Positions 1 through 24,893 of a stretch of 24,893 bases of DNA are shown here, piece after piece. Position numbers and translations under genes: made by a program. The notes beneath the pieces are model-generated. The model ran no database searches, had not been told where the DNA came from, and saw only the letters and a list, made by a program, of their open reading frames with translations. The stretch is from sequence record NC_043427.1. One strand, 5' to 3'. Position 1 is the first letter of the stretch, and every line of letters starts with the position of its first letter.

Positions 1-72
1 TTGGGGGGACTGGGGCTCCCATTCGTTGCCTTTATAAATCCTTGCAAGCCAATTAACAGGTTGGTGAGGGGC

Positions 73-174
73 TTGGGTGAAAAGGTGCTTAAGACTCCGT
101 GTAAGCAAAAGCCAGAGCTGTGTAAAAATGAGGAGAAAGTCAAGATATTGCCCGCTGGGGGTGAGGAAAAGTGA
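73..174 (+). CDS. Small hypothetical protein (33 aa, MGEKVLKTPCKQKPELCKNEEKVKILPAGGEEK)
   Basis: TTG start after GGTGAGGGG; its TGA stop overlaps the GTG of the next ORF (GTGA coupling). Below the ORF-track cutoff. Confidence 0.35.
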   Translation: MGEKVLKTPCKQKPELCKNEEKVKILPAGGEEK

Positions 175-407
175 GTGGAGGAGGGAAGCTCCCTGTAGAC
201 CCAAGCGAGATAAAGCAGATGCCTGAAGAGCAGCTACAGATGGGTATGAGCCTCCTAGAGCAGTTCCTGAAGGAGATAAAGGTTAAGGTGGAGCCGGACG
301 ACAAGGGAGTAAAGAGGATTGTCGTTGTTAGCTGGTATTATGAGATGCCAGACGAGGAAATGGCAAAGATTTTCGCTAAGAGTATAGCGGAGAGCCTCAG
401 GTCATAA
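171..407 (+). CDS. Hypothetical protein (78 aa)
   Basis: ORF with GGGGGTGAGG RBS and genome-typical composition. Confidence 0.75.
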   Translation: MSGGGKLPVDPSEIKQMPEEQLQMGMSLLEQFLKEIKVKVEPDDKGVKRIVVVSWYYEMPDEEMAKIFAKSIAESLRS

Positions 408-441
408 TCCTCCTTCCAACCCCTTTCTTTAAGGTGGTATT

Positions 442-1068
442 ATGGGTAGGATTACTGTTGAGGAAGAGAGTGAGGTAAAGAAGGCTGCAAAGCGGGAGTC
501 TAGCAAGGAAGCATTAGACGTTGGGAGGCCTCTAGGCCCATTAAAAAAAGCGTATCCTGAGGCGTTTGAGAAGCTTACAGCCCTGGAGCACGCTACAGGG
601 AAGAAGAAGATAGAGATAATGGCTGAAGCAATAGAGTTCTATGCGGAACACGCCTTATTGGGGGAGGCTTTCAAGCGGATTAGGAATCTAGACCCGGATG
701 ATATTGAGGCTATATGGATAGTGTTCAACTATTTCGAGATGAAGGCGTGGAAGAGGCAGATGTTCATGGCTAAGGAGCTGATACAGGGAACAATAGGAGA
801 GGTCCTCAGGTGGAGGGAGGAGATTTATTCCGAGGCTTGGGAGCAGGCTAGGCAGTATTACGAGGAGAGGATTAGGAGGATGCAGCAGAGGGGAGACGAT
901 GCTAGGAGGAGGAGGGTGGAGGAGATAACAGAGAAGATTCTAGCGAGGCTTGAGCCTTTAGTTGAAGCAATGGTGGAGCAGATGCTTGCTCCAACTATGA
1001 AGGCAGCAGGGGTTAAAAAGAGGCCTATGGAGAATGTTAAAGTTACGGTAGAGGGCCTTGAGGATTAG
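442..1068 (+). CDS. Ribbon-helix-helix-like DNA-binding protein with C-terminal coiled coil
   Basis: EAFEKLTALEHATGKKKIEIMAEAIEFY fits RHH helices A/B; E/R-rich heptad region follows; AGGTGG RBS. Confidence 0.6.
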   Translation: MGRITVEEESEVKKAAKRESSKEALDVGRPLGPLKKAYPEAFEKLTALEHATGKKKIEIMAEAIEFYAEHALLGEAFKRIRNLDPDDIEAIWIVFNYFEMKAWKRQMFMAKELIQGTIGEVLRWREEIYSEAWEQARQYYEERIRRMQQRGDDARRRRVEEITEKILARLEPLVEAMVEQMLAPTMKAAGVKKRPMENVKVTVEGLED

Positions 1069-1294
1069 AATTGTAACTGAGGATTATGTTGCAATCATTT
1101 CTGTTAGAAGGGCAGCTTACCTCTATCCTCTTCTCCACTGTTTTGACTACAGGGACCCTAGGAGGTGTGTGATTGAGACTCTGAAGAGAAGAGGATATAC
1201 TGTCAAACACGGTTATGTTGATGAGCTAGGGGAGGTAATCGAGACTGAGAGGCATAAGATAGTTATTCAATATAATGAAAGAAAGGGTGATTGA
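1058..1294 (+). CDS. Hypothetical protein (78 aa)
   Basis: ORF overlapping the previous stop, in the same operon. Confidence 0.65.
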   Translation: MRIRIVTEDYVAIISVRRAAYLYPLLHCFDYRDPRRCVIETLKRRGYTVKHGYVDELGEVIETERHKIVIQYNERKGD

Positions 1295-1309
1295 GGATTG
1301 GTGAGGGGT

Positions 1310-1837
1310 GTGGCTAGAGAAAGAGAAGCGGGGTTTGAAAGGGTAATAGGGCTTGTTCTCACGCTTCCCCTAGTGCTTGTGATGACATGGCTCATATTCA
1401 ATGCAGCGGTAGCATTCGCTCAGCGAAAGGAGGAGACAGTTCAGGCTGGGTTGAAGGCAATAGAGACGTATAATGAGAGCACTGCTGTTGAGATACCTGA
1501 GGGCCCGATTGATTATCCTGTTGCCGTATTCGAGCCGGTTAATGGTGCTAGTCATTTCTCATACATTGAGGGCATAAAGATTGAGGACCTGAACCCAGGA
1601 GGATTTGATAGGATTATGGTTGCTGTAGAGGCGGAGCTGGGAAGCGGGGCAAGGGCAACTATAGTTCCGCCTACAGAGATAGCTGGGCCTGACACGCTTA
1701 GGTGGGTCCTTGACAGCGTCCCAACGGGTGATACTATAAAGAAGGTCCTCGTGTATATCTGGGGAGAGACGTTTAGAGCAGACCAGACCGCAACTGCAAC
1801 GATAAGGGTAACTGGGCTCCAGGCGAGGGTAACTTAA
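1310..1837 (+). CDS. N-terminally membrane-anchored beta-rich protein, putative virion/surface protein
   Basis: Hydrophobic helix VIGLVLTLPLVLVMTWLIFNAAVAFA then a beta-strand-rich domain; GTG at 1310 follows GGTGAGGGG; N-E-S sequon. Confidence 0.65.
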   Translation: MAREREAGFERVIGLVLTLPLVLVMTWLIFNAAVAFAQRKEETVQAGLKAIETYNESTAVEIPEGPIDYPVAVFEPVNGASHFSYIEGIKIEDLNPGGFDRIMVAVEAELGSGARATIVPPTEIAGPDTLRWVLDSVPTGDTIKKVLVYIWGETFRADQTATATIRVTGLQARVT

Positions 1838-1843
1838 TAATAA

Positions 1844-2278
1844 ATGGAGCATGATGTAACGATTGGTGAGAGCGAAGTGCCGGTTTGGGAAAGCACGTTA
1901 AAGGGTCTTGCAATCCCCAAGGTCTTCAACGAGCAAAGGACTGGAAACATTAACTTCACGGGGAGCGGGACCCAGGATATCGAAACATTTGCTCCAGCGA
2001 ATGGGTTTGCCTATGTTGAGGGTGTTTATCTCAACTTGCAGAACCCAGGTACAGATGCTGTAACTGTTGATGTTGTTGCAGTCTATGATGATGCAACGGA
2101 AACAGTACTTGCATCCGTTAACCTCTCTGCTGGAGGAGCATTTGAAGACTGGCTAAGGTGGGCTTACGACGCTAAGACGAATGGGAAGACTGTAAAGCAA
2201 CTCAAGATAAGGGCAACTGCTGCTAGCAGCAATTCAGCTCTCAACTACACTGTCAGGGTTACTGGGACAGCACTCTAG
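1844..2278 (+). CDS. Beta-rich putative structural protein (144 aa)
   Basis: T/A/V/N/G-rich alternating beta pattern; sequons NFT, NLS, NYT. Confidence 0.6.
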   Translation: MEHDVTIGESEVPVWESTLKGLAIPKVFNEQRTGNINFTGSGTQDIETFAPANGFAYVEGVYLNLQNPGTDAVTVDVVAVYDDATETVLASVNLSAGGAFEDWLRWAYDAKTNGKTVKQLKIRATAASSNSALNYTVRVTGTAL

Positions 2279-2287
2279 GTGAGTTGA

Positions 2288-2590: not shown

Positions 2591-2634
2591 GATTATTAAT
2601 AAAAGGAGCCTCTCATAATCTGTGGTGCTTTGTC

Positions 2635-2766: not shown

Positions 2767-2774
2767 GGGGTGGT

Positions 2775-3740: not shown

Positions 3741-4526
3741 ATGAAGAGCGTTACGGCAGACCTTCCTTACCCCTACAAGTATGCTCATTGGCTCTGTGTA
3801 TCTATGAGAGCTAAGAGTATGAGTTATGAGGACAGGCTGGAGGCAGCCAGACAATGTTTAGCTGAGGGTAAGACGATAGGAATAGTAAACCTGTTTGGGC
3901 TCAAGCAGCCGTTGGACAGTCAGGGTTACAGGTACAGGTTTGACGGGGTTGCTTCAGTTGTTAGGAGGGATTCTAGGGTAGAGGTTGTTACTGAGAGGAG
4001 AGAGCGGGTTCCAGAGACGGTTTGGGAGAGGCTTGGTATGAGTGAGGAGCAGTACAGGCTGGGCATGAACTACTATAAAACTACTGCAAAAGAGCTGGCT
4101 GGAATATTTGATGTAAGCCTTGAGGAAGAGATTGAGAAGCTGTATAATAAGGCTTATGGGAGGATGACTCCTGAAGAGTTTGGAATAGAGCTTGCAAGGA
4201 TGATTAAGGACAGGCTTTTACAGCTTGTAAGAGAAGCTAGGAGGATGCAGGATGTTTTGAGAATGCTTGAGGAGAGGTATGGCATTAGGCTAGGCATAGA
4301 GGAGCCAACCGAGTTCATAAGGATTGTGGAGGAGGCTAGCCCTAGCAGCGTTATATCAATCCTATTCAAGGAGAACATCTACCAGATTGTCAGGTGGTAT
4401 AACAGGTTGAAGCGTGTTACAGAGCATGTCGAAGTTATAGAGAAGGCTGAGGAGTCTCTGAGGACAGGGAAGCTGCTAGTATCAGAGGAGGAGCTGAAAA
4501 GCTGCTTGAGGGCCTCCCAGAGCTAA
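3741..4526 (+). CDS. Hypothetical protein with N-terminal His/Cys domain (paralog of 24377-24577) and helical C-terminus; 3' end possibly frameshifted
   Basis: ATG 3741 follows GGGGTG; DLPYPYKYAHWLCV...AARQCLAEGKTIGIV aligns with the 24377 ORF. Confidence 0.75.
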   Translation: MKSVTADLPYPYKYAHWLCVSMRAKSMSYEDRLEAARQCLAEGKTIGIVNLFGLKQPLDSQGYRYRFDGVASVVRRDSRVEVVTERRERVPETVWERLGMSEEQYRLGMNYYKTTAKELAGIFDVSLEEEIEKLYNKAYGRMTPEEFGIELARMIKDRLLQLVREARRMQDVLRMLEERYGIRLGIEEPTEFIRIVEEASPSSVISILFKENIYQIVRWYNRLKRVTEHVEVIEKAEESLRTGKLLVSEEELKSCLRASQS

Positions 4527-4605: not shown

Positions 4606-5829
4606 TTGAATCATGTCTTTAGTATTAGTGGTGGGGATGTGTTTATAGTTCCATCTAGCTATGAAGTAGCATTTGTAACTCTCAACCCTGAATATACTGT
4701 AGCACTTGCCCTCTACCTCGACGTGAAGGTCGAGGGAACACCATTCCCCGTGAAGATTAGTAATGAGATAGTGCTAGAGCCGGGAGAGGTGGAGGTTAGG
4801 GAGAAGGCTGGGGTAGTAGAGGTTGTAGTAGCAGGAAGGAAGTACAGTGGTGCTCTGGCAAATCCAGAAGAGATACTGATGCCAGCGAAATTTGAAACAG
4901 TAGACATGCTCACAATTAGAGTTGATGTTGATGTGTTGAGGCTCATGAGGGACGTTAATACTGTAGCTTTATCGCTTGATGAGGATGTAGGCCTTGCTGA
5001 AGGAGACAACTGGGCTGTCATCGAGTTTGACAAGGATGGCAAGTTTGAGGCCGAGGCAGTGTTTCACGGTCGCTGGATAAGGCAGGCAGTACCTCCGAGC
5101 GTGTTTAGGGCGAGGAAGGATACAGTAACTATGAGGATTGCAAGGGATAGGCCTGTTATAGTTGAGGGTTATACTAGAGCTGGGCAACGGTTTGTTGCTG
5201 CAATAGGGCAATCTGTCGAGTCCCCAGGAATCCCATCAAGGTTCATATATCTTGAGCCAGAGTACATGAGGCCTAGTGAGCTCCTAGGCGTGCTTGAACT
5301 TGCATTTGATGTGGTGCTAGACTATTATAGCATATATGGAGTATTTACGCATTATGATTTCTTCAGTATAGGGCTCTCTAAAGGGGCTTCAGGAAGGTAC
5401 AGGTTGAGGCATAGCTTGCATGTGCCCAGGCCTATTAAGAGGGCAGTTGATATTGCAGGGGGGCTTCAAGCAGCACCGAGAGACGGTGTTTTAGACGTTA
5501 ATGGAGCCTTGCTAGAAGAGGTTGAGGAGCTACCTCGGGACATAGCAGAGGCAAAGGCTAGAGTAGAGGAGTATCAAATAGTTGAGGTATTCAACGTTAG
5601 AACGAAAGTGGATAGAGCTGAAATCAGGGATGGGGAGTTAATACTGTACAAGGGGAGGAGCGAGGTTCTAAGGATAAGCGTGCCTATATCAGGGGACTTT
5701 AGATTCGATAGCGAGCTGATACGGTACTTCACTCCAGGGGGGATAACGTTGATGGAGAGGGATGGGGAAGTTGCGTTGAGGTTTGAGAAGAGCTATAACA
5801 CATGGCTATTCGTGGAGGGGGTGAGATAA
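4606..5829 (+). CDS. PCNA/sliding-clamp-like protein, apparently two clamp-like units in tandem
   Basis: VAFVTLNPEYTVALALYL, RKYSGALANPEEILMP, LAEGDNWAVIEF and EAVFHGRWIRQAV...DTVTMRIARDRPVIVEG follow the archaeal PCNA motif order; the frame is open from 4561. Confidence 0.6.
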   Translation: MNHVFSISGGDVFIVPSSYEVAFVTLNPEYTVALALYLDVKVEGTPFPVKISNEIVLEPGEVEVREKAGVVEVVVAGRKYSGALANPEEILMPAKFETVDMLTIRVDVDVLRLMRDVNTVALSLDEDVGLAEGDNWAVIEFDKDGKFEAEAVFHGRWIRQAVPPSVFRARKDTVTMRIARDRPVIVEGYTRAGQRFVAAIGQSVESPGIPSRFIYLEPEYMRPSELLGVLELAFDVVLDYYSIYGVFTHYDFFSIGLSKGASGRYRLRHSLHVPRPIKRAVDIAGGLQAAPRDGVLDVNGALLEEVEELPRDIAEAKARVEEYQIVEVFNVRTKVDRAEIRDGELILYKGRSEVLRISVPISGDFRFDSELIRYFTPGGITLMERDGEVALRFEKSYNTWLFVEGVR

Positions 5830-6636: not shown

Positions 6637-6680
6637 TAAAAGCAACTGACTTTAGCTTGTGGTAGAGAGTGGGTGAGAAT

Positions 6681-6812
6681 ATGGCGAGCCCAGTAGACCT
6701 TGCGGCATTGTTTGGGCAGCTAGTGGGGATTCTGCCCTGGATAATGGTAATCGCATTACTGCCGGTCTTGATAAAGAGCATAGTAGAGGCGATAAGGGAG
6801 TTCAGGGCTTAG
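6681..6812 (+). CDS. Small hydrophobic MASP-family protein 1 (43 aa, MASPVDLAALFGQLVGILPWIMVIALLPVLIKSIVEAIREFRA)
   Basis: GGGTGAG RBS; paralogous to 6826 and 20849; not in the ORF track. Confidence 0.8.
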   Translation: MASPVDLAALFGQLVGILPWIMVIALLPVLIKSIVEAIREFRA

Positions 6813-6825: not shown

Positions 6826-6948
6826 ATGGCTAGTCCGTTCGACCTAAGTCAGATATTCCAGATGATAGTGCCAATAATGATGATACTCTTCGTGGTAATG
6901 CTTGTAAGCGTGCTCTTCAGGAGCCTCAGAGGAGCCTTCACAGCATAA
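6826..6948 (+). CDS. Small hydrophobic MASP-family protein 2 (40 aa, MASPFDLSQIFQMIVPIMMILFVVMLVSVLFRSLRGAFTA)
   Basis: GGGGGTGAGGAG RBS; paralogous to 6681 and 20849; not in the ORF track. Confidence 0.8.
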   Translation: MASPFDLSQIFQMIVPIMMILFVVMLVSVLFRSLRGAFTA

Positions 6949-13459: not shown

Positions 13460-13519
13460 AGCTAACGAGATTTTGCCTTGATGCTAAGGAGTATTGCATT
13501 GCGGTTGGGTGTGGATGGG

Positions 13520-13741
13520 ATGAAGGTTAGGGACTTCTGGAGGAGATACCTCGAAGCAGACGACGTTGAGAGGCTTGACTTGATTAAGGGGTTGCTAGAG
13601 AGGCATATCCACGCATGCTATACAATATACAAGGATAATAGAGTTCTTGGAGTTCATTGTCTAGTATCAATTGTGAACTCGTTTTTCCTTGATTTGATTA
13701 GGGTGCTCGGGGAGGAGAGAGATGGGCTGCGTGAGGAGTAG
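13520..13741 (+). CDS. Hypothetical protein
   Basis: In-frame ATG 13520 after GGTGTGGA; overlaps the next ORF. Confidence 0.6.
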   Translation: MKVRDFWRRYLEADDVERLDLIKGLLERHIHACYTIYKDNRVLGVHCLVSIVNSFFLDLIRVLGEERDGLREE

Positions 13742-13940
13742 AGTTCTCTGGGGAGATGTTTATGATAAGCTCTTTCATGTTGTTGAGGAGGCTGCTAGAA
13801 AGGGCAGGGTTGATATCGTTAAAGAGGCAAGGAAGCTGATTAAGGATTTGGAAATGTGGGACCCAAGTGAGGAGGTCTGCTATGACGAATTCTATAGTAG
13901 GATATCACGTCTGAAGGCGATGTTGAGGGTGAGAAAATGA
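13722..13940 (+). CDS. Hypothetical protein (72 aa)
   Basis: GGAGG RBS; ATGA overlap with the next ORF. Confidence 0.65.
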   Translation: MGCVRSRVLWGDVYDKLFHVVEEAARKGRVDIVKEARKLIKDLEMWDPSEEVCYDEFYSRISRLKAMLRVRK

Positions 13941-14125
13941 AAGTATCAACAGTGTTTAGAGTGTTTGTAACTGTCATTGCATTAATCCTATTTGCTTTCA
14001 GCATTCTCTACATCCCACCAGAATTTCTTTCGAATGATATATTTGCTGCAACACTATTTCTTTCGCTCTTCATGCTATTACTAATCGTTGTACTTCTCAT
14101 ATGGACCTCTCCAGCCCTCGATTAG
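13937..14125 (+). CDS. Two-TM small membrane protein (62 aa)
   Basis: Two long hydrophobic segments; GGGTGAG RBS. Confidence 0.7.
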   Translation: MKVSTVFRVFVTVIALILFAFSILYIPPEFLSNDIFAATLFLSLFMLLLIVVLLIWTSPALD

Positions 14126-14181
14126 GGTTTTGGCACATACAGACTAAGTAGTAAGGTTTATTACCCCCCGTGCCAAAACTG
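14125..14181. repeat. Inverted repeat flanking the recombinase promoter
   Basis: GTTTTGGCAC 14127-14136 and GTGCCAAAAC 14170-14179 with a 33-nt spacer that contains the TATA-like AAGGTTTATTA. Confidence 0.85.
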
Positions 14182-14201
14182 GTAGGGTGGAGGGATGCGG
14201 G

Positions 14202-15413
14202 ATGCCCAGGCCCTCTATCCAGAATGTCCTCGATTTAAGGCGGGATGAGGTCCTTGAGCTCCTTGGTCGAGGCATCCCAGCGGAGGATGTAGCGAAGAAA
14301 TTCGGGGTATCAAGGAGGACGCTATACCGCTGGCTAGAGCGTCAAGGCCTCACTGTTCAGAAAATCAGGGAGGAGTACCAGAAGCTGAAGGAGGAGCGTG
14401 AAAGGCGGAAGAGGGAGAGGCTAGCAGCTATTGGTGAGATACCGGAGGACTTCGAGAAGTTTGTTGAAATCGAGGAGGTAAGAAAGTTCCTTGACTGGCT
14501 CAAAGCAAGGAGGGTAACAACAGCAGTAGACATCGTGAGAACCCTACACAGGGTATGCCTAGACCTTGGTATCCACCCGATGCTACTGCTTGAGGATGAG
14601 GGGAAGGAGAAGCTGACGAGCCTCCTAGCCAAGTACAATGAAATGTATAAGAAGTGGACTGTGGAGAGCATTAAGGCCAATCTCAGGCTGTGGTACAAGT
14701 TCAACGAGAAGATGCCCCCCGCTATATTGAGCCTCGAAGCCTACAAGTCCAACATGGCTCACCTAGCGTGGTTCAACGTTAGCGATAGAGCCGTAATCCT
14801 TGAGACAGCCTTCCGCTTACTCGACAAGGAGCAGTTTGACAAGGTTAGAGCAGCTTTATTGTTCCTATTCTATACTGGGTCGAGGGCTGAAGCCCTGACT
14901 AACGTGAGGTTTGAGGCTCGTGAGGTTCAAGTTGATGGTAAGAGGATTACAGCGATAATAGCAATCACGAGGGAGAAGGGTAGGCACGGGAAAAAGCAGT
15001 GGGAGAAGCCTCTCCATCCAGTCATCTATGAAAAGTACATCAAGGGCAGGCTGCCATTCTCCCAGGCGGAGCTCAAGTGGTTGAGGAGGGTCCTCAAAGC
15101 GATATACAGAGAAGCTCTGAAGGGGCAGGAGAGCAGCGTGAAATATGAGTATGCTATGAAACACGTCATTCATATCTGGAGACACACGGCAGCAATGAGC
15201 ATGTTGCATGCGACGGACTGGAACGTTGGACTTGTTGCTGAGATTCTTGGGTGGGAGAGCCCCGATATTCTCCTCAAAATTTACGGCAGGATGCCTCCAG
15301 AGTGGAAGATTGCCCAGGCGTTGGGTGTAACTGTCGAGAGGCCTCCGTTCAGGTTTGTTTACGGGAATGAAGAAGAGAGGCTCAAGGAGCTTAGAATTCT
15401 GGAGCTCCCTTAA
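14202..15413 (+). CDS. Tyrosine recombinase with N-terminal HTH
   Basis: HTH (AEDVAKKFGVSRRTLYRWL); catalytic R (YTGSR), K (REKG), HxxR (HIWRH), W (LGWES, Cre-like) and Y (LKIYG). Confidence 0.92.
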   Translation: MPRPSIQNVLDLRRDEVLELLGRGIPAEDVAKKFGVSRRTLYRWLERQGLTVQKIREEYQKLKEERERRKRERLAAIGEIPEDFEKFVEIEEVRKFLDWLKARRVTTAVDIVRTLHRVCLDLGIHPMLLLEDEGKEKLTSLLAKYNEMYKKWTVESIKANLRLWYKFNEKMPPAILSLEAYKSNMAHLAWFNVSDRAVILETAFRLLDKEQFDKVRAALLFLFYTGSRAEALTNVRFEAREVQVDGKRITAIIAITREKGRHGKKQWEKPLHPVIYEKYIKGRLPFSQAELKWLRRVLKAIYREALKGQESSVKYEYAMKHVIHIWRHTAAMSMLHATDWNVGLVAEILGWESPDILLKIYGRMPPEWKIAQALGVTVERPPFRFVYGNEEERLKELRILELP

Positions 15414-15487: not shown

Positions 15488-15709
15488 ATGGAGCTTGTTG
15501 ATGAAATCAGATGGTTGAGGGAGGCTTTGCAGGACCTCGAAGACAGGGTTATTAATTGGGTGTCAAGACCCAGGGTTTACACGAGTCTCAGGGAAGCGTT
15601 TGAGCACACTGCAACCGATATTATGCTTGCTAGGACGCTTTTGGATATAGCAGCTTACAGGGAGGAGCTAGCACGGATAGAGAGGGTGGTGAAGGATGCA
15701 TGGGGTTGA
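15488..15709 (+). CDS. Helical/coiled-coil hypothetical protein (73 aa)
   Basis: GGTGAG RBS; heptad pattern. Confidence 0.7.
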   Translation: MELVDEIRWLREALQDLEDRVINWVSRPRVYTSLREAFEHTATDIMLARTLLDIAAYREELARIERVVKDAWG

Positions 15710-16100
15710 TGTTGAGAAGAGGATTTCCGAGCTGCTTGACGAATTTCAGCTATTCACCCCTCCTTTCCAGCAGCATATAATCAGCATCGAGGAGATTCTC
15801 CCTAAAACACCAATCTGTGTGATGCCAGAAGATATGAGAAGGATAGTTGCGAGTGCAAGGCTTGGAGATAGGAACATTGTTCTCTCTACACGGAGAAGGA
15901 TTAAGTTTGACACGACTATAACAGCAAAGGTTGACCCAGCAGCAAAGGCCTTCCTCGATGAAATGATTTCGCTCGGGATATTCGAGAATAAGAGCGAGGC
16001 GATAAGGGTTGCAATTTACCTCCTAAGGGAGGTGTTTGAGAAGGCGATACAGCAGAAGAGGGCTGAGCTAGACAATTTTAATAATGAAGGGAGAATATGA
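15696..16100 (+). CDS. Protein with C-terminal ribbon-helix-helix domain
   Basis: TITAKVDPAAKAFLDEMISLGIFENKSEAIRVAI is a CopG/Arc/MetJ-type pattern. Confidence 0.8.
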   Translation: MHGVDVEKRISELLDEFQLFTPPFQQHIISIEEILPKTPICVMPEDMRRIVASARLGDRNIVLSTRRRIKFDTTITAKVDPAAKAFLDEMISLGIFENKSEAIRVAIYLLREVFEKAIQQKRAELDNFNNEGRI

Positions 16101-16118
16101 GGAATGGTGGTGAGGGTT

Positions 16119-16235
16119 ATGGCTGCTCTCGGAAGCCCAGGACTAGCTGAGACGTTATCTAGCATAATGTATTGGCTCATGATAATAGGAGGGCTACTAG
16201 CTCTAGCGTATCTCCTGATTGAGGTGCTCAGATAA
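16119..16235 (+). CDS. Small single-TM protein (38 aa, MAALGSPGLAETLSSIMYWLMIIGGLLALAYLLIEVLR)
   Basis: GGTGAGG RBS; TAATG overlap with the next gene; not in the ORF track. Confidence 0.65.
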   Translation: MAALGSPGLAETLSSIMYWLMIIGGLLALAYLLIEVLR

Positions 16236-17440: not shown

Positions 17441-18613
17441 GTGAGAGGCGTGAGAGTTCTGATAACAGGTGTAACTGGGTTCAAGGGCTCTTATCTTGCG
17501 AAGAGGCTCGTTGAGGAGGGATGGAGGGTTTTCGGGCTGGTCAGGGGGAGAAGCGATAACCACAGATTCGTAAGGCTTAGACTACTGGGGATTCTCGATA
17601 ACGTGGAGCTTGTTGATGGGGACATGACAGACCCTGTGAGCTTGCAGAGAGCGATAGCTAAGACCCAGCCGGACGTGATATTTCACCTTGCGGCTCAATC
17701 TTTCGTTGGAAGGAGTTTCGAGGCTCCGCTGGAAACATTTAACATTAACGCTTACGGGACGGTAGCCCTACTTGAGGCTGCAAGAGCTCATGTACCAGAC
17801 TCTAAGATAATCGTTGCAGGTAGCAGTGAGGAGTATGGTAAACAGTTCATATCGGAGATGCAGTGGGAGAGGAGCGGGAAGCCGGGTCCAGAGCCTAAAA
17901 GGCTCCCCGAGCTCCCGATTCGTGAAGACAACCCGCTTAGACCTGTTAGCCCATATGCTTTGAGTAAGGTTGTTGAGGACTTTGCTTGCCAGGCCTATGC
18001 TAGGATGTATAACATGGATTGTACAGTTCTCAGGGTCTTCAATACTGAGGGCCCTCTCAGGGGAGAGGTCTTCGTTACGGCATCAATAGTGAAGCAGCTT
18101 GTAGCAGTCAAGAACGGCTTGAGAAAATATGTCGAGCTAGGCAACGTTGCAGCTATGAGGGACTGGTCTCATATCGAGGACACCATTGAGGCTTATTATA
18201 ACGCTACAAAGGTGAGAGGAGGCGTTTACAACGTTGGTAGCGGGAGGATTAACAGTGTGCTCTACTTCCTTGTTAGAGCGTTTAACGCTGTGTTTAATGA
18301 TGAGGCAGAACTCGTTAGGATAGAGGATAGGAACGTTATTACACTGTTCCCAGAGGAGGTTGACGAGATGATTTTGAGTTACATGAAGGAAGGTGTTGAA
18401 CCATTCAAGCCAGGCATGAGGATATCTGTGATAGGCAAGAGACATAGTGTTGATGTGGTTCTTAGCAGAGAGAGGTTCAGGCCTGCTGACGTTCCTCTGC
18501 TACAAGCTGACTATTCAAGGTTTGCACAAGCTACTGGATGGAAGCCTATGAGGAGCCTAGACGACATCATAGAGGACCTTGTAAGCTTCTATACTGGAAG
18601 GTGGAAGCCTTGA
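17441..18613 (+). CDS. gmd: GDP-mannose 4,6-dehydratase-like extended SDR
   Basis: TGVTGFKGSYLA Rossmann loop, HLAAQSFV, SSEEYG, YALSK (YxxxK), FNTEGPLRGEVFVT and LGNVAAMRDW; substrate is inferred from motif resemblance. Confidence 0.75.
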   Translation: MRGVRVLITGVTGFKGSYLAKRLVEEGWRVFGLVRGRSDNHRFVRLRLLGILDNVELVDGDMTDPVSLQRAIAKTQPDVIFHLAAQSFVGRSFEAPLETFNINAYGTVALLEAARAHVPDSKIIVAGSSEEYGKQFISEMQWERSGKPGPEPKRLPELPIREDNPLRPVSPYALSKVVEDFACQAYARMYNMDCTVLRVFNTEGPLRGEVFVTASIVKQLVAVKNGLRKYVELGNVAAMRDWSHIEDTIEAYYNATKVRGGVYNVGSGRINSVLYFLVRAFNAVFNDEAELVRIEDRNVITLFPEEVDEMILSYMKEGVEPFKPGMRISVIGKRHSVDVVLSRERFRPADVPLLQADYSRFAQATGWKPMRSLDDIIEDLVSFYTGRWKP

Positions 18614-19269
18614 AGGCCCTCCAACGGATGGAGAAAGTGGTGGAACAGGCCAAGAAATGGGCTAGCAAGGGAGACGGAATCATTAGCGGTAGTGTTGCAG
18701 CATGGCTACAGGGAATTAAATTGCAGCTTCGAGACGCAGACATAATTGTTAAGAAGATGCCTAGCATTAAGGAAGTGGAGATAGTGAAGGCCGAGAGGGT
18801 TGTTTACGGGAGCACTATAAACGACGTTGTTGCATTCATTGATGATGGGGTTGGTGTGGAACTAGTTGCTAATCCAGTTGTGTACAGGTACCTTGCTGAG
18901 AGAGGTGTTGTGGTTGATGGGCTGAAGGTTGTGTCGTTGAGTGAAGTATTTGCAATGAAGCTGGCAAAGCTTGCAATAAGCCTTGGAGCCAGTAAAGCAG
19001 ATATTATCTGGCATCAAGTGCCAAAGACGGTATCAGACTTACTGTTGCTTTACGATGAAGGCGTTGTTGATTTTGCCCGTGTAAGAGATTTCATCGAGAC
19101 GTTTGGGTTCAGGGACGCTATTGCATTGCTAAGATACAGCCATATTGCTCTTGAAGTGCAGATGTCGTTTACTCTAGCATCATACTATCTTGGAATATAC
19201 GATTACGAGGAGGTTATGGAGATTTATCGAAGCATGATGAGGGAGACGTTGGAGGTGCTCGGGGTATGA
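18610..19269 (+). CDS. Pol-beta-superfamily nucleotidyltransferase (AbiEii/MenT-like) paralog 1
   Basis: IISGSVAAWLQG...RDADII, VELV, and KVVSLSEVFAMKL...SDLLLL; start TTG 18610 (TTGA overlap) or ATG 18628. Confidence 0.75.
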   Translation: MKALQRMEKVVEQAKKWASKGDGIISGSVAAWLQGIKLQLRDADIIVKKMPSIKEVEIVKAERVVYGSTINDVVAFIDDGVGVELVANPVVYRYLAERGVVVDGLKVVSLSEVFAMKLAKLAISLGASKADIIWHQVPKTVSDLLLLYDEGVVDFARVRDFIETFGFRDAIALLRYSHIALEVQMSFTLASYYLGIYDYEEVMEIYRSMMRETLEVLGV

Positions 19270-19865
19270 GGTTAAGGGCTTACACGTTAGAAGACCTAGC
19301 TAGAGTCTATAAAAAGGTAGATGCGAAGTTCAAAGTCGTTGTTGGGGATATTGTGGCCTGCATCTATGGATATCCTTGCTTGGCTAAAGACATTGACTTA
19401 GTTATGCCGCTTGAGCTAGCTGGGAGGCTCAAGAACCTGCCAGGCGTGAAACTCGGAGAAGGCAAGGTTGTTGAAACAGAGATTGACGGCATAAACGTTA
19501 GCTTCAACCTTGAGCCCATGTTCAGGCTTAAGCTATTCTACATGCCTTTTATTGAGGTATCAAGGATTAACGGGGTAGAGGTTGCTCATTACTCTCTGGA
19601 AAGGTATGTTGCTGGACGGCTGAAAAGGCTAATAATAATGCTAAGGAACGGGAAGGAGAATATCTATCTCATACCTTATCAGTTGATGGACTTGGTGCCA
19701 ATCCTGTGTGATAAGAGAGAGATACTATTGGGGGCTAGGCGTATTCTTGAGAGGAGGTTTGACATGGATTATAACGAGTTGTTGCGGATGAATAGGGACA
19801 TTATTGATGCTGCAAACAATATGAGTAGAGACATATTCGGAGTTGCTTGCAGATGGTCGTGGTGA
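19266..19865 (+). CDS. Nucleotidyltransferase-fold paralog 2 (degenerate)
   Basis: VVVGDIVACIYGYPCLAKDIDLV and YSLERYVAGRL...MDLVPIL; ATGA overlap. Confidence 0.7.
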   Translation: MRLRAYTLEDLARVYKKVDAKFKVVVGDIVACIYGYPCLAKDIDLVMPLELAGRLKNLPGVKLGEGKVVETEIDGINVSFNLEPMFRLKLFYMPFIEVSRINGVEVAHYSLERYVAGRLKRLIIMLRNGKENIYLIPYQLMDLVPILCDKREILLGARRILERRFDMDYNELLRMNRDIIDAANNMSRDIFGVACRWSW

Positions 19866-19868
19866 ATC

Positions 19869-20537
19869 GTGGTGGTATGGATAAGGGATAGGTGTTGCTT
19901 GAGGGCATTAAGCCTTGCAGAAGCCGTTTTAAAGGAGAGTACAGCGTTCCCTGCTGGGAGCCTTTTGCTCCTCAAGGGTGGTGTTCAGACTTACTTTAGG
20001 GATATTGATATTATGAGTACTGTTGAGGATTACGAGAGGAATGCTGAAGTTTTCAATAGAATCCTGAGTGAATGCACAGTCTTGAAGCATAGATGGCTTG
20101 CTAGGAGCTGTTTTGGTTGCCCTGTCGAGCTTATACCCGTCCCGAGCTTCCTAAAGGAAGAATACGAGAGGAGGGGCCCAGTAGAGTTTTGGCTTGGAAC
20201 TAACATTGCGAAACTTACACGTTGGAAGCACGAGTTCACGGCTGCAAAGTTCCTAGCAAAACTTTTTGTCGTGTTGTCCCAGGTGGATGATATTAGCATT
20301 GAAGATGTTAGGGAGCACTTAGAGGTTCAGAGGAAAGTTGGTTACATGCGGGGTAAGATTCAGATTAAAAAGAGCACGTTTACTCCTGCATATTATCTTT
20401 ACAGATACATCTATATTAGCGATGATACGAGGTTTGTTGAAGCAGCTTATGAGCACGAGTTAGGCGTATTCTCATCAAGGCTTATTGCATTTTTTGAGAG
20501 GCTTCGCTCACACGGAATACCCGTTGAAATCCTTTAG
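19869..20537 (+). CDS. Nucleotidyltransferase-fold paralog 3
   Basis: FPAGSLLLLKGGVQTYFRDIDIM and PVELIP. Confidence 0.65.
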   Translation: MVVWIRDRCCLRALSLAEAVLKESTAFPAGSLLLLKGGVQTYFRDIDIMSTVEDYERNAEVFNRILSECTVLKHRWLARSCFGCPVELIPVPSFLKEEYERRGPVEFWLGTNIAKLTRWKHEFTAAKFLAKLFVVLSQVDDISIEDVREHLEVQRKVGYMRGKIQIKKSTFTPAYYLYRYIYISDDTRFVEAAYEHELGVFSSRLIAFFERLRSHGIPVEIL

Positions 20538-20585: not shown

Positions 20586-20828
20586 ATGGACCCGGAGCTG
20601 AAACCCATTATTCGGCTTATCCTTCTAAGGCTCGTGGAAGAGCCCGGGGCAAGAATGAAATATAGAAAGCTTTACAGATATGTTCAAGAGCACGCAAAGA
20701 AATTCGGGGTATCCCCAACTGAAGCCATTTACGCAGCAGCCAACCTAGACCTTATTGTTATTGAGGGAGACGAGGTAAGGCTGACAGAGAAGGGGGAGAA
20801 AGAAACATTTATAATAATGGGATGGTAG
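20586..20828 (+). CDS. Winged-helix DNA-binding protein
   Basis: LDLIVIEGDEVRLTEKG wing/terminal helix motif. Confidence 0.7.
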   Translation: MDPELKPIIRLILLRLVEEPGARMKYRKLYRYVQEHAKKFGVSPTEAIYAAANLDLIVIEGDEVRLTEKGEKETFIIMGW

Positions 20829-20848
20829 CTAGAGTTATGGTGAGGGTT

Positions 20849-21019
20849 ATGGCTAGCCCATTAGATTTATCATCAATATTCGGCCAGCTAGTGCCAATAT
20901 TCGTGTTCATCATGATATTTGTACTGCTGATTACGCTGTTCAAGACCCTCTTCAGAACAATATCAGGGGCCTCTGCTAGGAGGTTTCCAAGCATCTTAGC
21001 TAGGATAAGGGGCAGGTAA
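20849..21019 (+). CDS. Small hydrophobic MASP-family protein 3 with a basic tail (56 aa)
   Basis: MASPLDLSSIFGQLVPIFVFIMIFVLLITLF; ATG 20849 after GGTGAGG. Confidence 0.8.
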   Translation: MASPLDLSSIFGQLVPIFVFIMIFVLLITLFKTLFRTISGASARRFPSILARIRGR

Positions 21020-22120: not shown

Positions 22121-22456
22121 ATGGTTAAGGTCTATGCCATTGACAGGGATGGAACTCTTGAGACTGGAGAGCCTCCAGGTCCTCTCAAGATATGCCAAGT
22201 CCTCAAGCTCCTCAAGCAAGGACACATCCTCTACTCCTATGGAAATTACAAGCTGATTGAGGAGCTGCCCATTCCCTATGCCCCAGGGAGGGACAAATGG
22301 CAGAGGCTCAAGTGGATAATGGAGAGGCATCCTGATGCAGAGGAGTACATCTATATTGATGATGTGGACCAAAAGATGCCTGGATGGAAGTGGCTTAAAC
22401 CCGAGGAGGCAGCAAGGATGATAGGACCGTGCCCCCATGAGGAGAGGGCCCTATGA
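22121..22456 (+). CDS. Minimal capless HAD-superfamily phosphatase
   Basis: Motif I AIDRDGTL, motif II LYSYG, motif III Lys (DKWQRL), motif IV YIDD. Confidence 0.75.
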   Translation: MVKVYAIDRDGTLETGEPPGPLKICQVLKLLKQGHILYSYGNYKLIEELPIPYAPGRDKWQRLKWIMERHPDAEEYIYIDDVDQKMPGWKWLKPEEAARMIGPCPHEERAL

Positions 22457-22690
22457 GGAGCGGGGAGCAATGACTGGGGAGCCCCACCTGAGGGGTGTGT
22501 GCCAAAACCTCTCCTATAATAAAAATCTCTCCTTAGTAGGCTCGGGAAATGAGAAGAATAACCCCCCGGGATTGGGAGGCCCAAAGGAGAAACCATCAAA
22601 GGGGAAATGGCACACAGGACCATAATTCCAACTCTACATAGTCTAGGGAGTATCCTTAACTGAAGGCCTCTTCCTCATTGTTTAGAGGGG

Positions 22691-22718
22691 GTTTTGGCAC
22701 AGACACAAGTGCCAAAAC
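22691..22718. repeat. Perfect 10-bp inverted repeat with 8-nt spacer (recombinase core-site-like)
   Basis: GTTTTGGCAC-AGACACAA-GTGCCAAAAC; the same arm occurs at 14127, 14170 and 22499. Confidence 0.9.
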
Positions 22719-22759
22719 TGTGCCAGCATCATTGTCCATATGAAAAGGTCATCAGATAA

Positions 22760-22839
22760 TGGGGGTCCCAATCCGCTTGCTTATGGTATCCCAGCCATGA
22801 GGCTCATGGTATCCCAACTTCATCAGTCATGGTATCCCA
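22760..22839 (+). repeat. Iteron-like direct repeats with 23-bp period
   Basis: ATGGTATCCCA at 22783, 22806 and 22829; a degenerate copy ending TCCCA at 22770 is in register. Confidence 0.9.
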
Positions 22840-22860
22840 CATTATCATTACTATGTTTCA

Positions 22861-22905
22861 AAGCCCTCTTTCAAACATCATGAATCATTGATGTGAATAG
22901 GGCTT
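22861..22905. repeat. Imperfect hairpin
   Basis: AAGCCCT/AGGGCTT, TTC/GAA and ACATCA/TGATGT stems around an 8-nt loop. Confidence 0.7.
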
Positions 22906-23034
22906 CGGCCTGTGCCAATTTGCAAGTTTTGAGTTAATAGGCATAAGAGTTTAGCTTATAGATGGTACAGAAGAGTTGTGTCTTTAAGCCAATCACCTTA
23001 CCAATTAAGGTATGTTTCCCAGCATACTCTAGCC

Positions 23035-23117
23035 TACCATCAAGTATGCTTTTTTCCATTCACTTAGAATACCCGAAGCTTACCATTCAGTATGCATAGT
23101 AATACCATCAAGCATAC
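23035..23117 (+). repeat. Dispersed TACCAT-containing repeats upstream of the wHTH/RHH cluster
   Basis: TACCATCAAGTATGC (23035), TACCATTCAGTATGC (23081), TACCATCAAGCATAC (23103). Confidence 0.7.
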
Positions 23118-23148
23118 CATCATGGATGCTAGGTGGATATATCGGGGT

Positions 23149-23496
23149 ATGCTCCTTAAAAGTGCGGTCTCCACAAGAAACAATATCGGTCGGAGGGGTT
23201 TGGTGGTGGATGAGGAATCATTCACCACAATCTTAAGGAGGCTTCATATGCCAGGATACCTCAAGGCTCTGCTGTACATCGCATATAAGTCTAAGAAGAC
23301 GGAGAACGGGGTTGTGCAGCTTCCGTTAGTGCTGAGAAGAAGCAAGTACCCGTTTAACCGCAACGACATCTATAGGCTTGAGTATGAGGGGATGATTGCT
23401 ATGGTTAAGGAAGAGAATAGGATAGTCGTTTCAATGCTTGCTAAGGGCTGGGAGGAGCTCAAGGCTTTAAGAGAAATCTTGGAGGTGGTCTCATGA
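23149..23496 (+). CDS. Winged-helix DNA-binding protein
   Basis: DIYRLEYEGMIAMV...VSMLAKGWEEL; ATG 23149 follows GGGGT (upstream ATGs are possible). Confidence 0.7.
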   Translation: MLLKSAVSTRNNIGRRGLVVDEESFTTILRRLHMPGYLKALLYIAYKSKKTENGVVQLPLVLRRSKYPFNRNDIYRLEYEGMIAMVKEENRIVVSMLAKGWEELKALREILEVVS

Positions 23497-23777
23497 AGGT
23501 GATTCAGACAAAGTTGGGTGAGGAGGAGTATAAGGTTCTAAAGGAGATTGCAGAGGCTCAAGGAGTCAGCATGTACGAGCTCGTTAGAAGGATAGTGTTG
23601 AAGGAGCTTGCAAAGATGGGGAAGGTAAAGCGGGATAAGATTAACAGTCAAGACAGGCTAGAGGAGCTTGAACATAGGGTATCAATGTTGGAGGAGCGAG
23701 TTAAGAGAATCGAGACGGATATCAAAGAAATCAAGCAACGACTCCAGAGGAACTCGATTGATAGGTGGGTGAGATAA
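23493..23777 (+). CDS. RHH protein with C-terminal leucine zipper
   Basis: KVIQTKLGEEEYKVLKEIAEAQGVSMYELVRRIV and LEELEHRVSMLEERVKRIE. Confidence 0.85.
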   Translation: MKVIQTKLGEEEYKVLKEIAEAQGVSMYELVRRIVLKELAKMGKVKRDKINSQDRLEELEHRVSMLEERVKRIETDIKEIKQRLQRNSIDRWVR

Positions 23778-24136
23778 TGAACAAGATAGACAAGGATATA
23801 CTTGAGGCCGTGATGAAGATGACAAACCAGAGGCGTGATGTTAAGATAACGAAGGATGAGCTGTTTGTTTACATGTACCTGAGCATGAAGAGGAATGGCT
23901 TGAAACCATATAGCTTCGAGACGATAGCCAGGAGACTTAGAATCCTCGTTAGAAAGGGCTACTTTACCGTGAAATACGTTGAAGAGAAGAAAGGCAATCT
24001 GAAGTGGAGAAGAGCATACTACATTCCACGAAGGCTAACAATAGCTGCAAAGCTGAAGGCAGAGCAGTTAAGGTCTGCTACTCTAACAGTTTATGGGGTT
24101 AAAGTTGGAGCCAGCAGTAACAGCAGCGAGCGATGA
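23777..24136 (+). CDS. Winged-helix DNA-binding protein
   Basis: SFETIARRLRILVRKGYFTV recognition helix and wing; TAATG overlap. Confidence 0.75.
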   Translation: MNKIDKDILEAVMKMTNQRRDVKITKDELFVYMYLSMKRNGLKPYSFETIARRLRILVRKGYFTVKYVEEKKGNLKWRRAYYIPRRLTIAAKLKAEQLRSATLTVYGVKVGASSNSSER

Positions 24137-24398
24137 AGAGCTAAAACAGAGAATTATGAAGGTCTTGCAGAACGGGAGCAAGACTCTTGTCGAGGTTCAT
24201 TTTTTAGTTGAGAAGACTGGCTTCGTTGTTTCTTACAGGCGTCTCAAGCTGGTTGTTGACGAGATGGTTCAATCTGGGCTTATAGAAAAAATGAGGGACG
24301 GAAAAAAGGTAAAGTATAAGATAAAAGAAGGGCAGCATAAGATATGGCTCGAATACCCCTGGAGAGGTGAGGAAGAGTGGGCAAGTATGCGACTCTAA
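24093..24398 (+). CDS. Winged-helix DNA-binding protein
   Basis: RIMKVLQNGSKTLVEV...LKLVVDEMVQSGLIEKMRDGKKVKYKI. Confidence 0.8.
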   Translation: MGLKLEPAVTAASDEELKQRIMKVLQNGSKTLVEVHFLVEKTGFVVSYRRLKLVVDEMVQSGLIEKMRDGKKVKYKIKEGQHKIWLEYPWRGEEEWASMRL

Positions 24399-24577
24399 CA
24401 CAGGACCTTCCCGAGGAGTACAGGAAGGCTCACCCCATATGTGTGGCTAGTAAAGTGGCCAAAATGGGCTACGAGCCTGCAAGGGCTCCTAGGGACGTGA
24501 GGCAGAGAGCAGCCGAGGAGTGTATAAGGGAGGGCAAGCTGCACGGCATAGTGAAGCTGCTAAGCCCCTCGGTTTGA
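24377..24577 (+). CDS. Stand-alone His/Cys domain protein (paralog of the 3741 N-terminus)
   Basis: DLPEEYRKAHPICVASKVAKMGYE...RAAEECIREGKLHGIV; GAGGTGAGG RBS. Confidence 0.8.
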   Translation: MGKYATLTQDLPEEYRKAHPICVASKVAKMGYEPARAPRDVRQRAAEECIREGKLHGIVKLLSPSV

Positions 24578-24582
24578 AGGCC

Positions 24583-24804
24583 CTAGAACCTATACCTCCT
24601 AATTATTTTTTCAATGTCGCTTACACTGAACTTCTTCTTCTTGTTTGACATCAAATACTGAATTTGAAGGAATCTCAGTACTCTTACAACCTTTCCAATT
24701 GGATGCTTTAAGAGGATATCTGTCATCTTGTCTGCATCATCCTCTCCCAACCCTAGCTCGATGAGAGTCCTTCTTATCATATCTCTGAATTCTTTCCGCT
24801 CCAC
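24583..24804 (-). CDS. Only credible reverse-strand gene; helical, basic protein (73 aa)
   Basis: AGGTAGGTGA RBS on the minus strand; local purine skew is inverted; convergent with 24377-24577. Confidence 0.8.
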   Translation of the reverse strand: MERKEFRDMIRRTLIELGLGEDDADKMTDILLKHPIGKVVRVLRFLQIQYLMSNKKKKFSVSDIEKIIRRYRF

Positions 24805-24850
24805 ATTATCACCTACCTGTAAAGTTGTTGGCTACTGCTAATTTGGGTTT

Positions 24851-24893
24851 CCCAGTCTCTCCCAGTCTCCCCCATTAATTCATATTCACCTAA
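24851..24893. repeat. Left arm and loop of the junction-spanning stem-loop, plus a CCCAGTCTC tandem repeat
   Basis: 24861-24877 pairs with 24891-24893 plus 1-14 when the window is circularised; CCCAGTCTC at 24851 and 24861. Confidence 0.8.

Follow-up and report, generated by a model that had tools for sequence, protein, structure and literature searches.

[quoted passage not shown] The ACV record carries 57 annotated coding sequences, all but one of them on the + strand (56/57), and no + strand ORF spans the circular junction. The published inventory (GenBank annotation, ICTV profile) includes a tyrosine recombinase, thioredoxins, a serine protease, glycosyltransferases and DNA-binding proteins. 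Annotated as DNA binders in GenBank are ORF43-80 (20586-20828, + strand; a winged helix-turn-helix (wHTH) protein), ORF54-119 (23777-24136; weak match to Pfam HTH_24, 0.08) and ORF55-80 (24156-24398), and as ribbon-helix-helix (RHH) proteins ORF35-134 (15696-16100) and ORF53-94 (23493-23777), both with weak matches to Pfam RHH_1 (0.008 and 2e-4, respectively). New with respect to the GenBank annotation, the ICTV profile and the searchable papers are the nucleotidyltransferase (NTase) triplet ORF40-42, the clamp-like signal of ORF11-407, the paired GTGCCAAAAC sites and the relatives described below.

No match to a Rep, primase, polymerase, helicase, terminase, FtsK or HerA family was obtained in searches of the ACV ORFs, in which Pfam covered all 57 (the 40 that are 72 aa or longer, at E<=1, plus the 17 smaller ones) and PHROGs, NCBIfam and PADLOC covered 20, 10 and 9 ORFs, respectively, chosen from the larger unknowns. 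Regular-expression scans of all annotated ORFs returned neither a Walker A motif ([AG]xxxxGK[ST]) nor an HUH motif (hydrophobic-H-hydrophobic-H-hydrophobic), and the longest six-frame stop-to-stop segment that carries either of them measures 54 aa and lies on the antisense strand. Relaxed scans of the ORFs showed no DEAD/DExH, DTD or SLYP motif and found HxH tripeptides in ORF27-58 and ORF30-86 only; that of ORF27-58 was rejected as a conserved motif, its second histidine being a phenylalanine in the homologue from one relative (L008). The preliminary description of this DNA had reported, by eye, neither an HUH motif set nor a Walker A loop and no recognisable Rep, polymerase, helicase or packaging ATPase, and this holds for the small ORFs as well, a divergent member of these families not being detected either. 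The absence is real, yet it is already in the literature: according to the ICTV profile, ACV has no identifiable polymerases or rolling-circle (RCR) Rep and probably relies on the replisome of its host. It should be read as an absence at the level of detectable homology, around 30 of the ORFs being ORFans that have no usable structural model.

Distant metagenomic relatives of ACV exist, among them a 48.6-kb contig (NODE_672) that is syntenic with ACV and in which neither the precomputed Pfam matches of the whole contig nor a scan of its large unknown proteins pointed to a Rep, polymerase, helicase or ATPase. Identity to the relatives' proteins is highest for the recombinase (66%), followed by ORF29 (54%), ORF10 (38%) and ORF3 and ORF11 (26-32%, full-length).

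The recombinase, ORF33-403 (14202-15413, + strand), has an N-terminal resolvase-type HTH (Pfam HTH_7, 1.6e-8) and, behind it, a divergent catalytic domain of the tyrosine-recombinase type. It matches the PHROG integrase families phrog_216 (1.2e-8) and phrog_1 (2.5e-7), its residues R228, H324-x-x-R327, W351 and Y361 are invariant in an alignment with relatives that are 66-68% identical, and the 66%-identical orthologue matches Pfam Phage_integrase in precomputed annotation. Solved recombinases gave no sequence match. Judged by the family matches and the retained catalytic residues, ORF33-403 is a real tyrosine recombinase.

A 10-mer, GTGCCAAAAC, occurs exactly five times in the genome (five matches at <=1 mismatch, all of them exact; 0/100 shuffles reach five), four copies forming two inverted pairs and the fifth lying at 22499-22508. 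The first pair (14127-14179; 14127-14136 on the - strand and 14170-14179 on the + strand) flanks a TATA-like TTTATTA immediately upstream of the ORF33-403 start codon and is probably an operator or recombinase-binding site; a relative's recombinase gene has the same promoter architecture, with an analogous perfect 10-nt inverted pair upstream. The second pair forms a perfect palindrome, GTTTTGGCAC-AGACACAA-GTGCCAAAAC (22691-22718), which has the 10-8-10 layout of lox/dif-type core sites, can form a hairpin in ssDNA and is located in the main intergenic region. This 336-nt non-coding region (22626-22961) also contains the sole iteron cluster of the genome, three exact copies of ATGGTATCCCA at 23-nt spacing (22783-22839, + strand; three matches are reached in 1/100 shuffles). 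Both the recombinase with its sites and the iterons had been proposed from the sequence before, and both were borne out.

ORF29-347 (12416-13459, + strand) combines an RHH domain (Pfam RHH_5, 9.6e-4; PHROG Arc-like repressor, 0.002) with a Cys/His region, a coiled coil and a C-terminal domain; of the five ACV proteins for which relatives were compared, it ranks second in conservation, after the recombinase, and its homologue adjoins the recombinase in the relatives L008 and L018. ORF10-261 (3741-4526, + strand) begins with a conserved domain and continues as a coiled coil, and in relatives its homologue is fused to that of ORF11 in a single protein of 672-690 aa. ORF11-407 (4606-5829, + strand) is a tentative candidate for a sliding-clamp fold, the PCNA-like protein of the preliminary description. 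Most of the top 50 Foldseek matches of its AF2 model in the PDB are clamps, among them Pol III beta (E 7e-4) and Sulfolobus PCNA (probability 0.98-0.99), and those in BFVD are phage DnaN and PCNA proteins; what weighs against the assignment is the model itself (mean pLDDT 44.7, only residues ~320-400 reaching 74-87), TM-scores of 0.2-0.37 and sequence searches in which no sequence or profile similarity to clamps was found. The HAD phosphatase that had also been proposed, ORF49-111 (22121-22456, + strand), is an ORFan in which, of the HAD motifs, only motif I (AIDRDGTL) and motif IV (in YIDDVD) can be seen by eye, and for which no Pfam, PHROG, NCBIfam or PDB match and no homologues were found; BLASTP against a relative's HAD-methyltransferase protein aligned motif I alone (E 0.15).

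That polymerase motifs are missing stands as far as recognisable DNA polymerases are concerned, but not for nucleotidyltransferases: the three tandem paralogs ORF40-219, ORF41-199 and ORF42-221 (18610-20537, + strand) carry an invariant G27..G35..D42xD44 signature of the Pol-beta superfamily (alignments A1 and A4). Their profile matches the PDB 'putative nucleotidyltransferase' TM1012 (E 4e-4 and 9e-4), a weak match to AbiEii (E 0.098) was also obtained, no Pfam, NCBIfam or PADLOC family was reached at threshold, and the AF2 model of the group (pLDDT 43) is unusable. A glutamate in the downstream strand of ORF40 and ORF42 (VELV / VELI) is a serine in ORF41 (VSFN; alignment A1). The triplet is directly preceded by GDP-mannose dehydratase and glycosyltransferase genes, as in a relative, and a closer metagenomic relative keeps a 55%-identical homologue. 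All three are classed here as NTase-fold proteins of a minimal type, none of them a recognisable DNA polymerase.

This is a known virus, and its lack of replication enzymes is genuine and already on record; the best explanation, and one we consider probable, is that its genome is copied by the host replisome. The incoming circular (+) ssDNA would be converted to a double-stranded replicative form, all copying being done by the Aeropyrum machinery (primase, PolB, PCNA/RFC, MCM). The viral input would be limited to accessory factors: several small RHH and wHTH proteins, whose target would be the non-coding region that holds the iterons and the palindrome, a clamp-like core protein (ORF10/ORF11) as a possible addition, and the recombinase together with binding sites of its own. 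Strand cleavage by tyrosine recombinases yields a 3'-phosphotyrosine plus a free 5'-OH and can therefore not provide a 3'-OH primer as HUH Reps do. This argues against rolling-circle synthesis being primed by ORF33-403, for which the resolution of multimers or integration is the likelier role. Acting on the 10-8-10 site, it would most plausibly resolve multimers to unit circles, or integrate and excise the genome, and it would probably regulate its own expression via the first of the two inverted pairs. A search of 185,579 species genomes with ORF10 as a probe returned no integrated element of the ACV type, so an integrative lifestyle is not supported. Assembly could proceed without a packaging ATPase, the virion being a helical filament of nucleoprotein that forms around the DNA, with no preformed capsid to fill. 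A positive sign of host-replisome recruitment was sought in ACV and not found: there is no ORB-like cluster (five one-mismatch matches, all within coding sequence) and no PIP-box motif in any of the ORFs. The host-replisome model also leaves the production of ssDNA progeny without a nickase unaccounted for.

A less likely alternative is that ACV does encode a replication initiator, primase or ATPase whose divergence or novelty of fold keeps it from being recognised, for instance in ORF9-303, ORF10-261, ORF21-227 or ORF52-134. For most ACV proteins no homologue can be detected; searches of 5.8 billion proteins, or of 1.8 billion cluster representatives, turned up one relative at most for ORF11 and for ORF49. 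Viruses of hyperthermophilic archaea are, in general, known for extreme sequence divergence. With so many ORFans, and with both AF2 models of low confidence and too poor for excluding folds, a novel initiator could hide among the ORFans. However, P-loop and HUH motifs are normally kept even by very divergent members of these families, and Walker A, HUH and DxD-plus-His patterns occur in no ACV ORF of adequate length; moreover, the searches of the 48.6-kb relative pointed to no such enzyme either.

More doubtful is the proposal that the recombinase nicks its sites to start replication and forms, with the iteron-binding wHTH proteins, the PCNA-like protein and the HAD phosphatase, a self-contained non-HUH module. 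Several of its parts were retained (the recombinase and its sites, the iterons in the same non-coding region, tentatively the clamp), conservation among the proteins compared is highest for the recombinase and ORF29, and an end blocked by a 3'-phosphate could in principle be freed by a 3'-phosphatase of the HAD type. Nothing shows joint action, however: the recombinase chemistry creates no 3'-OH, the HAD assignment comes from motifs, the clamp call depends on the low-confidence model, and the genes are scattered (~4.6, 14.2, 20.6-24.4 and 22.1 kb). That ORF40-42 supply the missing nucleic-acid synthesis, e.g. by untemplated tailing or priming on ssDNA, is very improbable despite the invariant motif, the TM1012 match, the tandem copies and the conserved homologue, given that the closest matches are minimal NTases with small molecules or RNA ends as substrates and not templated polymerases, that the gene order points to a modification module, that the glutamate is not kept in ORF41, and that no gene of this type was noticed in the 48.6-kb relative, albeit short of a direct comparison of its ORFs with ORF40-42.

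Compared with known systems, ORF40-42 share the G[SG]...DxD motif with TM1012/AbiEii-type minimal nucleotidyltransferases, the profile match extending across the motif region, but they are three tandem paralogs with no evident HEPN or antitoxin partner. ORF11-407, at 407 aa, is about as long as a three-domain beta clamp (366 aa in Escherichia coli DnaN) and its model matches mainly Pol III beta, archaeal PCNA and phage or virus clamps; unlike processivity clamps, it has no viral polymerase or clamp loader to serve, and the fusion of its homologues to a coiled-coil protein is unusual for a clamp. With the HUH-Rep ssDNA viruses (Microviridae, Inoviridae and the CRESS-DNA viruses of Cressdnaviricota) ACV shares a circular (+) ssDNA genome and a non-coding region that, with its hairpin and iterons, resembles many RCR origins; it differs in having no HUH or YxxK motif set, Rep family match, SF3 helicase or assembly ATPase, and in a genome several times larger than those of rolling-circle ssDNA viruses. 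A parallel in layout is offered by XerCD/dif, Cre/loxP, XerCD on CTX-phi ssDNA and integron IntI/attC, where a tyrosine recombinase likewise comes with a site in which an 8-nt spacer separates inverted arms of ~10 bp, and the ACV site can fold into a hairpin in ssDNA as in the systems that use folded ssDNA; ORF33-403 differs in bearing an extra N-terminal resolvase-type HTH. In all these systems a separate Rep or the host replicates the DNA, and the recombinase only resolves or integrates.

The sequence was found to be identical to the type genome HE681887 (100% nucleotide identity across 24,893 nt), which places it in the Spiraviridae as Aeropyrum coil-shaped virus (ACV). The record (HE681887.1/NC_043427.1; Alphaspiravirus yamagawaense) describes the circular (+) ssDNA genome of a virus that infects Aeropyrum pernix, and its GenBank annotation holds 57 CDS, of which 56 are on the + strand. 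A 'hypothetical recombinase' (ORF33-403), a serine protease and a GDP-mannose dehydratase are among the annotated products, as are two thioredoxins, two glycosyltransferases and several RHH and wHTH proteins. No + strand ORF was found that spans the circular junction.

The preliminary description had recognised no Rep, polymerase, helicase or packaging ATPase in this genome, and motif scans and HMM searches confirmed that view. Regular-expression scans of the 57 annotated ORFs retrieved neither a Walker A loop ([AG]xxxxGK[ST]) nor a hydrophobic HUH or HUQ motif, and six-frame matches to Walker A or HUH were confined to short or antisense segments (the longest 54 aa). The three GK[ST] tripeptides present in the ORFs all lack a glycine-rich loop, and the 'AEGKT' of ORF10 was rejected as a deviant P-loop for the same reason and because its surroundings look helical by eye. 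Relaxed scans of the ORFs recovered no DEAD/DExH, DTD or SLYP motif, the sole hhhDhD was that of thioredoxin ORF13, and HxH was limited to ORF27-58 and ORF30-86. The 'LHFHG' of ORF27-58 was dismissed as an HUH motif, the protein being 58 aa long and its homologue on a metagenomic contig (L008) reading LHFFG, with the second histidine replaced by phenylalanine. Similarly, no match to Rep, primase, polymerase, helicase, terminase or other ATPase families was obtained with Pfam (40 ORFs of at least 72 aa at E<=1, plus the 17 smaller ORFs), PHROGs (20 ORFs), NCBIfam (10 ORFs) or PADLOC (9 ORFs). Thus, no protein combines an HUH motif II with the YxxK tyrosine of motif III or matches a Rep-family HMM; P-loop NTPases (SF3 helicase, FtsK/HerA, terminase packaging ATPase) are missing both as Walker A loops in the annotated ORFs and as family matches; and DNA polymerases and archaeo-eukaryotic primases are missing as family matches and as DTD or SLYP motifs. 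We infer that no packaging ATPase is to be expected, because the ACV virion is a nucleoprotein filament. The absence of replication enzymes repeats a published negative, and the question of how replication works in the largest known ssDNA virus when no Rep is encoded dates from 2012.

The non-canonical replication module suggested in the preliminary description was supported in part. Its recombinase proved to be real, and candidate sites for the enzyme are present. ORF33-403 has a resolvase-type HTH at its N-terminus (Pfam HTH_7, 1.6e-8) and a C-terminal domain matching PHROG integrase families (1.2e-8 and 2.5e-7), and its orthologue in a 48.6-kb metagenomic relative carries a precomputed match to Pfam Phage_integrase. 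In the alignment R228, H324-x-x-R327, W351 and Y361 are unchanged in the relatives, so that both catalytic residues and integrase HMMs identify the protein as a tyrosine recombinase; it is too divergent to have a sequence match among solved structures. There are exactly five copies of the 10-mer GTGCCAAAAC in the genome, whereas none of 100 shuffled sequences had five or more. One inverted pair (14127-14136 and 14170-14179) brackets a TATA-like element immediately before the start codon of the recombinase gene, a second forms a perfect 10-8-10 palindrome (22691-22718) inside a 336-nt non-coding region where three exact copies of the ATGGTATCCCA iteron, spaced at 23 nt, are also found, and the fifth copy of the 10-mer is at 22499-22508. 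Both inverted pairs are non-random and are candidates for the core site of ORF33-403. Core sites of the lox/dif/FRT type have the same 10-8-10 layout. In the relative, too, the recombinase gene is preceded by a perfect 10-nt inverted pair with a TATA-like element between its arms, and an AT-rich non-coding stretch holds more copies of the 10-nt element. Since both viruses have an inverted pair at the recombinase promoter, the architecture of the putative recombinase sites is conserved.

Another finding was that ACV, for which the ICTV profile lists no known relatives, has several distant relatives in metagenomes. The largest is NODE_672 of ENA ERZ1742239 (48,627 bp; stretches L024, L011, L015, L018, L020 and L022), parts of which recur in ERZ27227320, JGI 3300014911 and SRR6823441; the JGI 3300014911 stretches are L013, L016 and L019, and other sequences came from QMWT01000106.1 (L008) and ERZ23495249 (L003). 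NODE_672 is about twice the size of ACV and syntenic with it, with seven genes in ACV order and proteins 26-66% identical to those of ACV. Sequence comparison showed homology for five genes, among them an ORF3-like gene (32%), a fusion of ORF10 and ORF11, an ORF29-like gene (54%) and, on the minus strand, the recombinase (66%). The match to an ORF2-like protein was made by eye, and the thioredoxin, a glycosyltransferase and the protease were paired through Pfam family and position only. From the Guaymas Basin, a 3.3-kb contig assigned to a Thermoprotei genome bin bears the recombinase together with an ORF29-like gene. IMG/VR scans with alignments of ORF10, ORF3 and the recombinase returned ACV itself only, and a scan of genome contigs with ORF10 found nothing. 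No Rep, polymerase, helicase or ATPase was found in NODE_672, either in precomputed Pfam matches over the whole contig or in our own scan of its large unknown proteins.

The recombinase and ORF29 are far better kept in NODE_672 than ORF3, ORF10 and ORF11 (26-38% full-length identity), as seen when 12416-15413 of ACV is compared with L018 3308-5807, and in the relative ORF29 is divided into two pieces and the recombinase is encoded by the other strand. This conservation and arrangement suggest either strong constraint or exchange of the module between viruses. NODE_672 begins in a poly-A run and has neither inverted terminal repeats nor an end overlap (L024 1-90, L022 1-70), and it is not a doubled 24-kb circle. 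Its end sequence is presumably an Illumina Nextera adapter; if so, the use of tagmentation would mean a double-stranded template at the time the library was prepared. GC skew on the coding strand of ACV is positive in every 1-kb window (+0.10 to +0.36, without sign change), and that of the relative is likewise positive except at its minus-strand genes; it tracks the coding strand in both and was rejected as a marker of an origin or of ssDNA. NODE_672 also carries genes that are absent from ACV. Those for a RAMP protein, Csf3, a PAPS-reductase-like protein and a Cys-rich protein of 182 aa look like a type IV CRISPR-Cas effector set; the others encode a radical-SAM protein with an intein, a HAD-methyltransferase fusion, a nuclease resembling Cas4 and two repeat proteins that are very rich in Cys (L020 16325-19437, 10383-12740 and 13427-14218; L024 8615-9244).

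We also found a nucleotidyltransferase signature that the preliminary description had missed. ORF40-219, ORF41-199 and ORF42-221 are tandem paralogs (22-27% identity) in which G27, G35, D42 and D44 are invariant, also in the aligned sequence P0005, in agreement with the hG[GS]x9-13Dh[DE]h motif of the Pol-beta superfamily (G27..G35..D42xD44). Their profile matches TM1012, a 'putative nucleotidyltransferase' in the PDB, across this motif (E 4e-4 and 9e-4), and on a metagenomic contig a 55%-identical homologue adjoins a GDP-mannose dehydratase fragment, as in the ACV gene order. The three proteins are probably minimal nucleotidyltransferases acting as modification enzymes and do not look like replicative polymerases. 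We found no mention of the triplet in the searchable literature. The AF2 model of ORF40-219 (four sequences; pLDDT 43) gave random Foldseek matches and was discarded; it was kept as a negative control, indicating that a poor model alone gives no coherent matches.

For the PCNA-like protein of the preliminary description the outcome was mixed: structure comparison favoured it, whereas sequence and profile searches found no clamp. The candidate, ORF11-407, is the largest ACV ORF of unknown function and one of the few genes that ACV has in common with its only known relatives, which carry it as a fusion with ORF10. It has no sequence match in Pfam, PHROGs, NCBIfam, PADLOC or the PDB, and word-indexed and IMG/VR homologue searches returned only itself. 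Exhaustive HMMER comparison with 1.8 billion cluster representatives yielded one true relative, the protein P0006 (E 1e-8), with an ORF10-like N-terminus fused to an ORF11-like C-terminus; a second match was a spurious zinc-finger repeat protein. The AF2 model from this two-sequence alignment is poor (mean pLDDT 44.7, reaching 74-87 only at residues ~320-400), yet sliding clamps make up most of its top 50 Foldseek matches in the PDB, including Pol III beta (E 7e-4), Sulfolobus PCNA and the African swine fever virus clamp (probability 0.98-0.99), the 9-1-1 checkpoint clamp and A. pernix PCNA1, and phage DnaN and PCNA proteins are matched in BFVD. TM-scores are low (0.2-0.37). The ORF40-219 model is equally poor and its matches were random, so the clamp signal is no general by-product of low model quality. 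Neither phmmer nor hmmsearch with ORF11-407 retrieved a clamp from the PDB, hhalign against E. coli DnaN was not significant (probability 0.3), and a short GDFxFxSxL likeness to DnaN was out of register and rejected as chance. A clamp-like fold of ORF11-407 is, on the predicted model, plausible but unproven. As to its neighbour ORF10-261, the highly conserved N-terminal domain (3741-3900) shares 'C..EGK(L/T)(H/I)GIV.L' with ORF56-66 (24377-24577), and a 79-aa ORF of the relative (L006 6225-6464) has the same motif.

The HAD phosphatase of the proposed module found no support beyond the motif level. ORF49-111 carries AIDRDGTL (DxDGT) and YIDDVD (DD), and had no match in Pfam, PHROGs, NCBIfam, PADLOC or the PDB and no homologue; in a BLASTP comparison with the HAD-methyltransferase fusion of the relative, motif I alone aligned (E 0.15).

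Several small ACV proteins form groups of their own. ORF14-47 (6669-6812), ORF15-40 (6826-6948), ORF36-43 (16104-16235) and ORF44-65 (20822-21019) are apparent paralogs, small and hydrophobic, all with a transmembrane segment and a basic tail and three of the four starting with 'MASP.DL'; a DNA repeat of 47 nt is common to the start regions of ORF36 and ORF44 (16078-16124, 20808-20854). The four proteins look like coat proteins of the inovirus type and may correspond to the 5-13 kDa minor virion proteins. Two small ORFs weakly matched T4SS_pilin (Pfam). ORF5-178 and ORF6-144 (1301-2278) have similar '...(T/I)(V/I)RVTG...' C-termini and look like paralogs, and with a comparable pair in the relative (242 aa and 223 aa, L018 7994-9405) they may be structural proteins.

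On the best-supported reading, ACV relies on the host, as the literature already proposes, and its genome would be copied by the host replisome. The recombinase would most likely act at the lox-like site in multimer resolution or genome integration, and most likely also regulate its own expression at its promoter. For host recruitment we scanned with the ORB-like pattern TCCANNGGAAAC and obtained no cluster in ACV, only scattered one-mismatch matches in coding sequence; a PIP-box motif was equally absent from the ACV ORFs, and candidate host-recruitment signals were therefore rejected. A second explanation is that a replication initiator may be hidden among the approximately 30 ORFans that have no structural model. 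Less likely than reliance on the host replisome, and in our judgement rather improbable, is the proposal that ORF11-407 is a virus-encoded sliding-clamp homologue which, with the recombinase/ORF29 pair and the lox-like palindrome, takes part in Rep-independent replication and monomerisation of the 25-kb circular ssDNA, the 48.6-kb relative representing a wider, previously unseen lineage defined by this gene set.

The new leads (the nucleotidyltransferase triplet, the clamp-like core protein, the site pairs and the relatives) modestly raise the value of the published negative. They provide handles in the form of a lox/dif-like recombinase site, a possible clamp-fold core protein and three paralogs with a predicted nucleotidyltransferase fold, and with the metagenomic relatives comparative genomics and deeper alignments become possible for the first time. 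Should the clamp or recombinase leads prove true, they would point to a strategy for circular-ssDNA replication without an HUH endonuclease. Priming of rolling-circle synthesis by the recombinase itself is unlikely, because cleavage by a tyrosine recombinase yields a 3'-phosphotyrosine and a free 5'-OH, a polarity opposite to that of HUH Reps.
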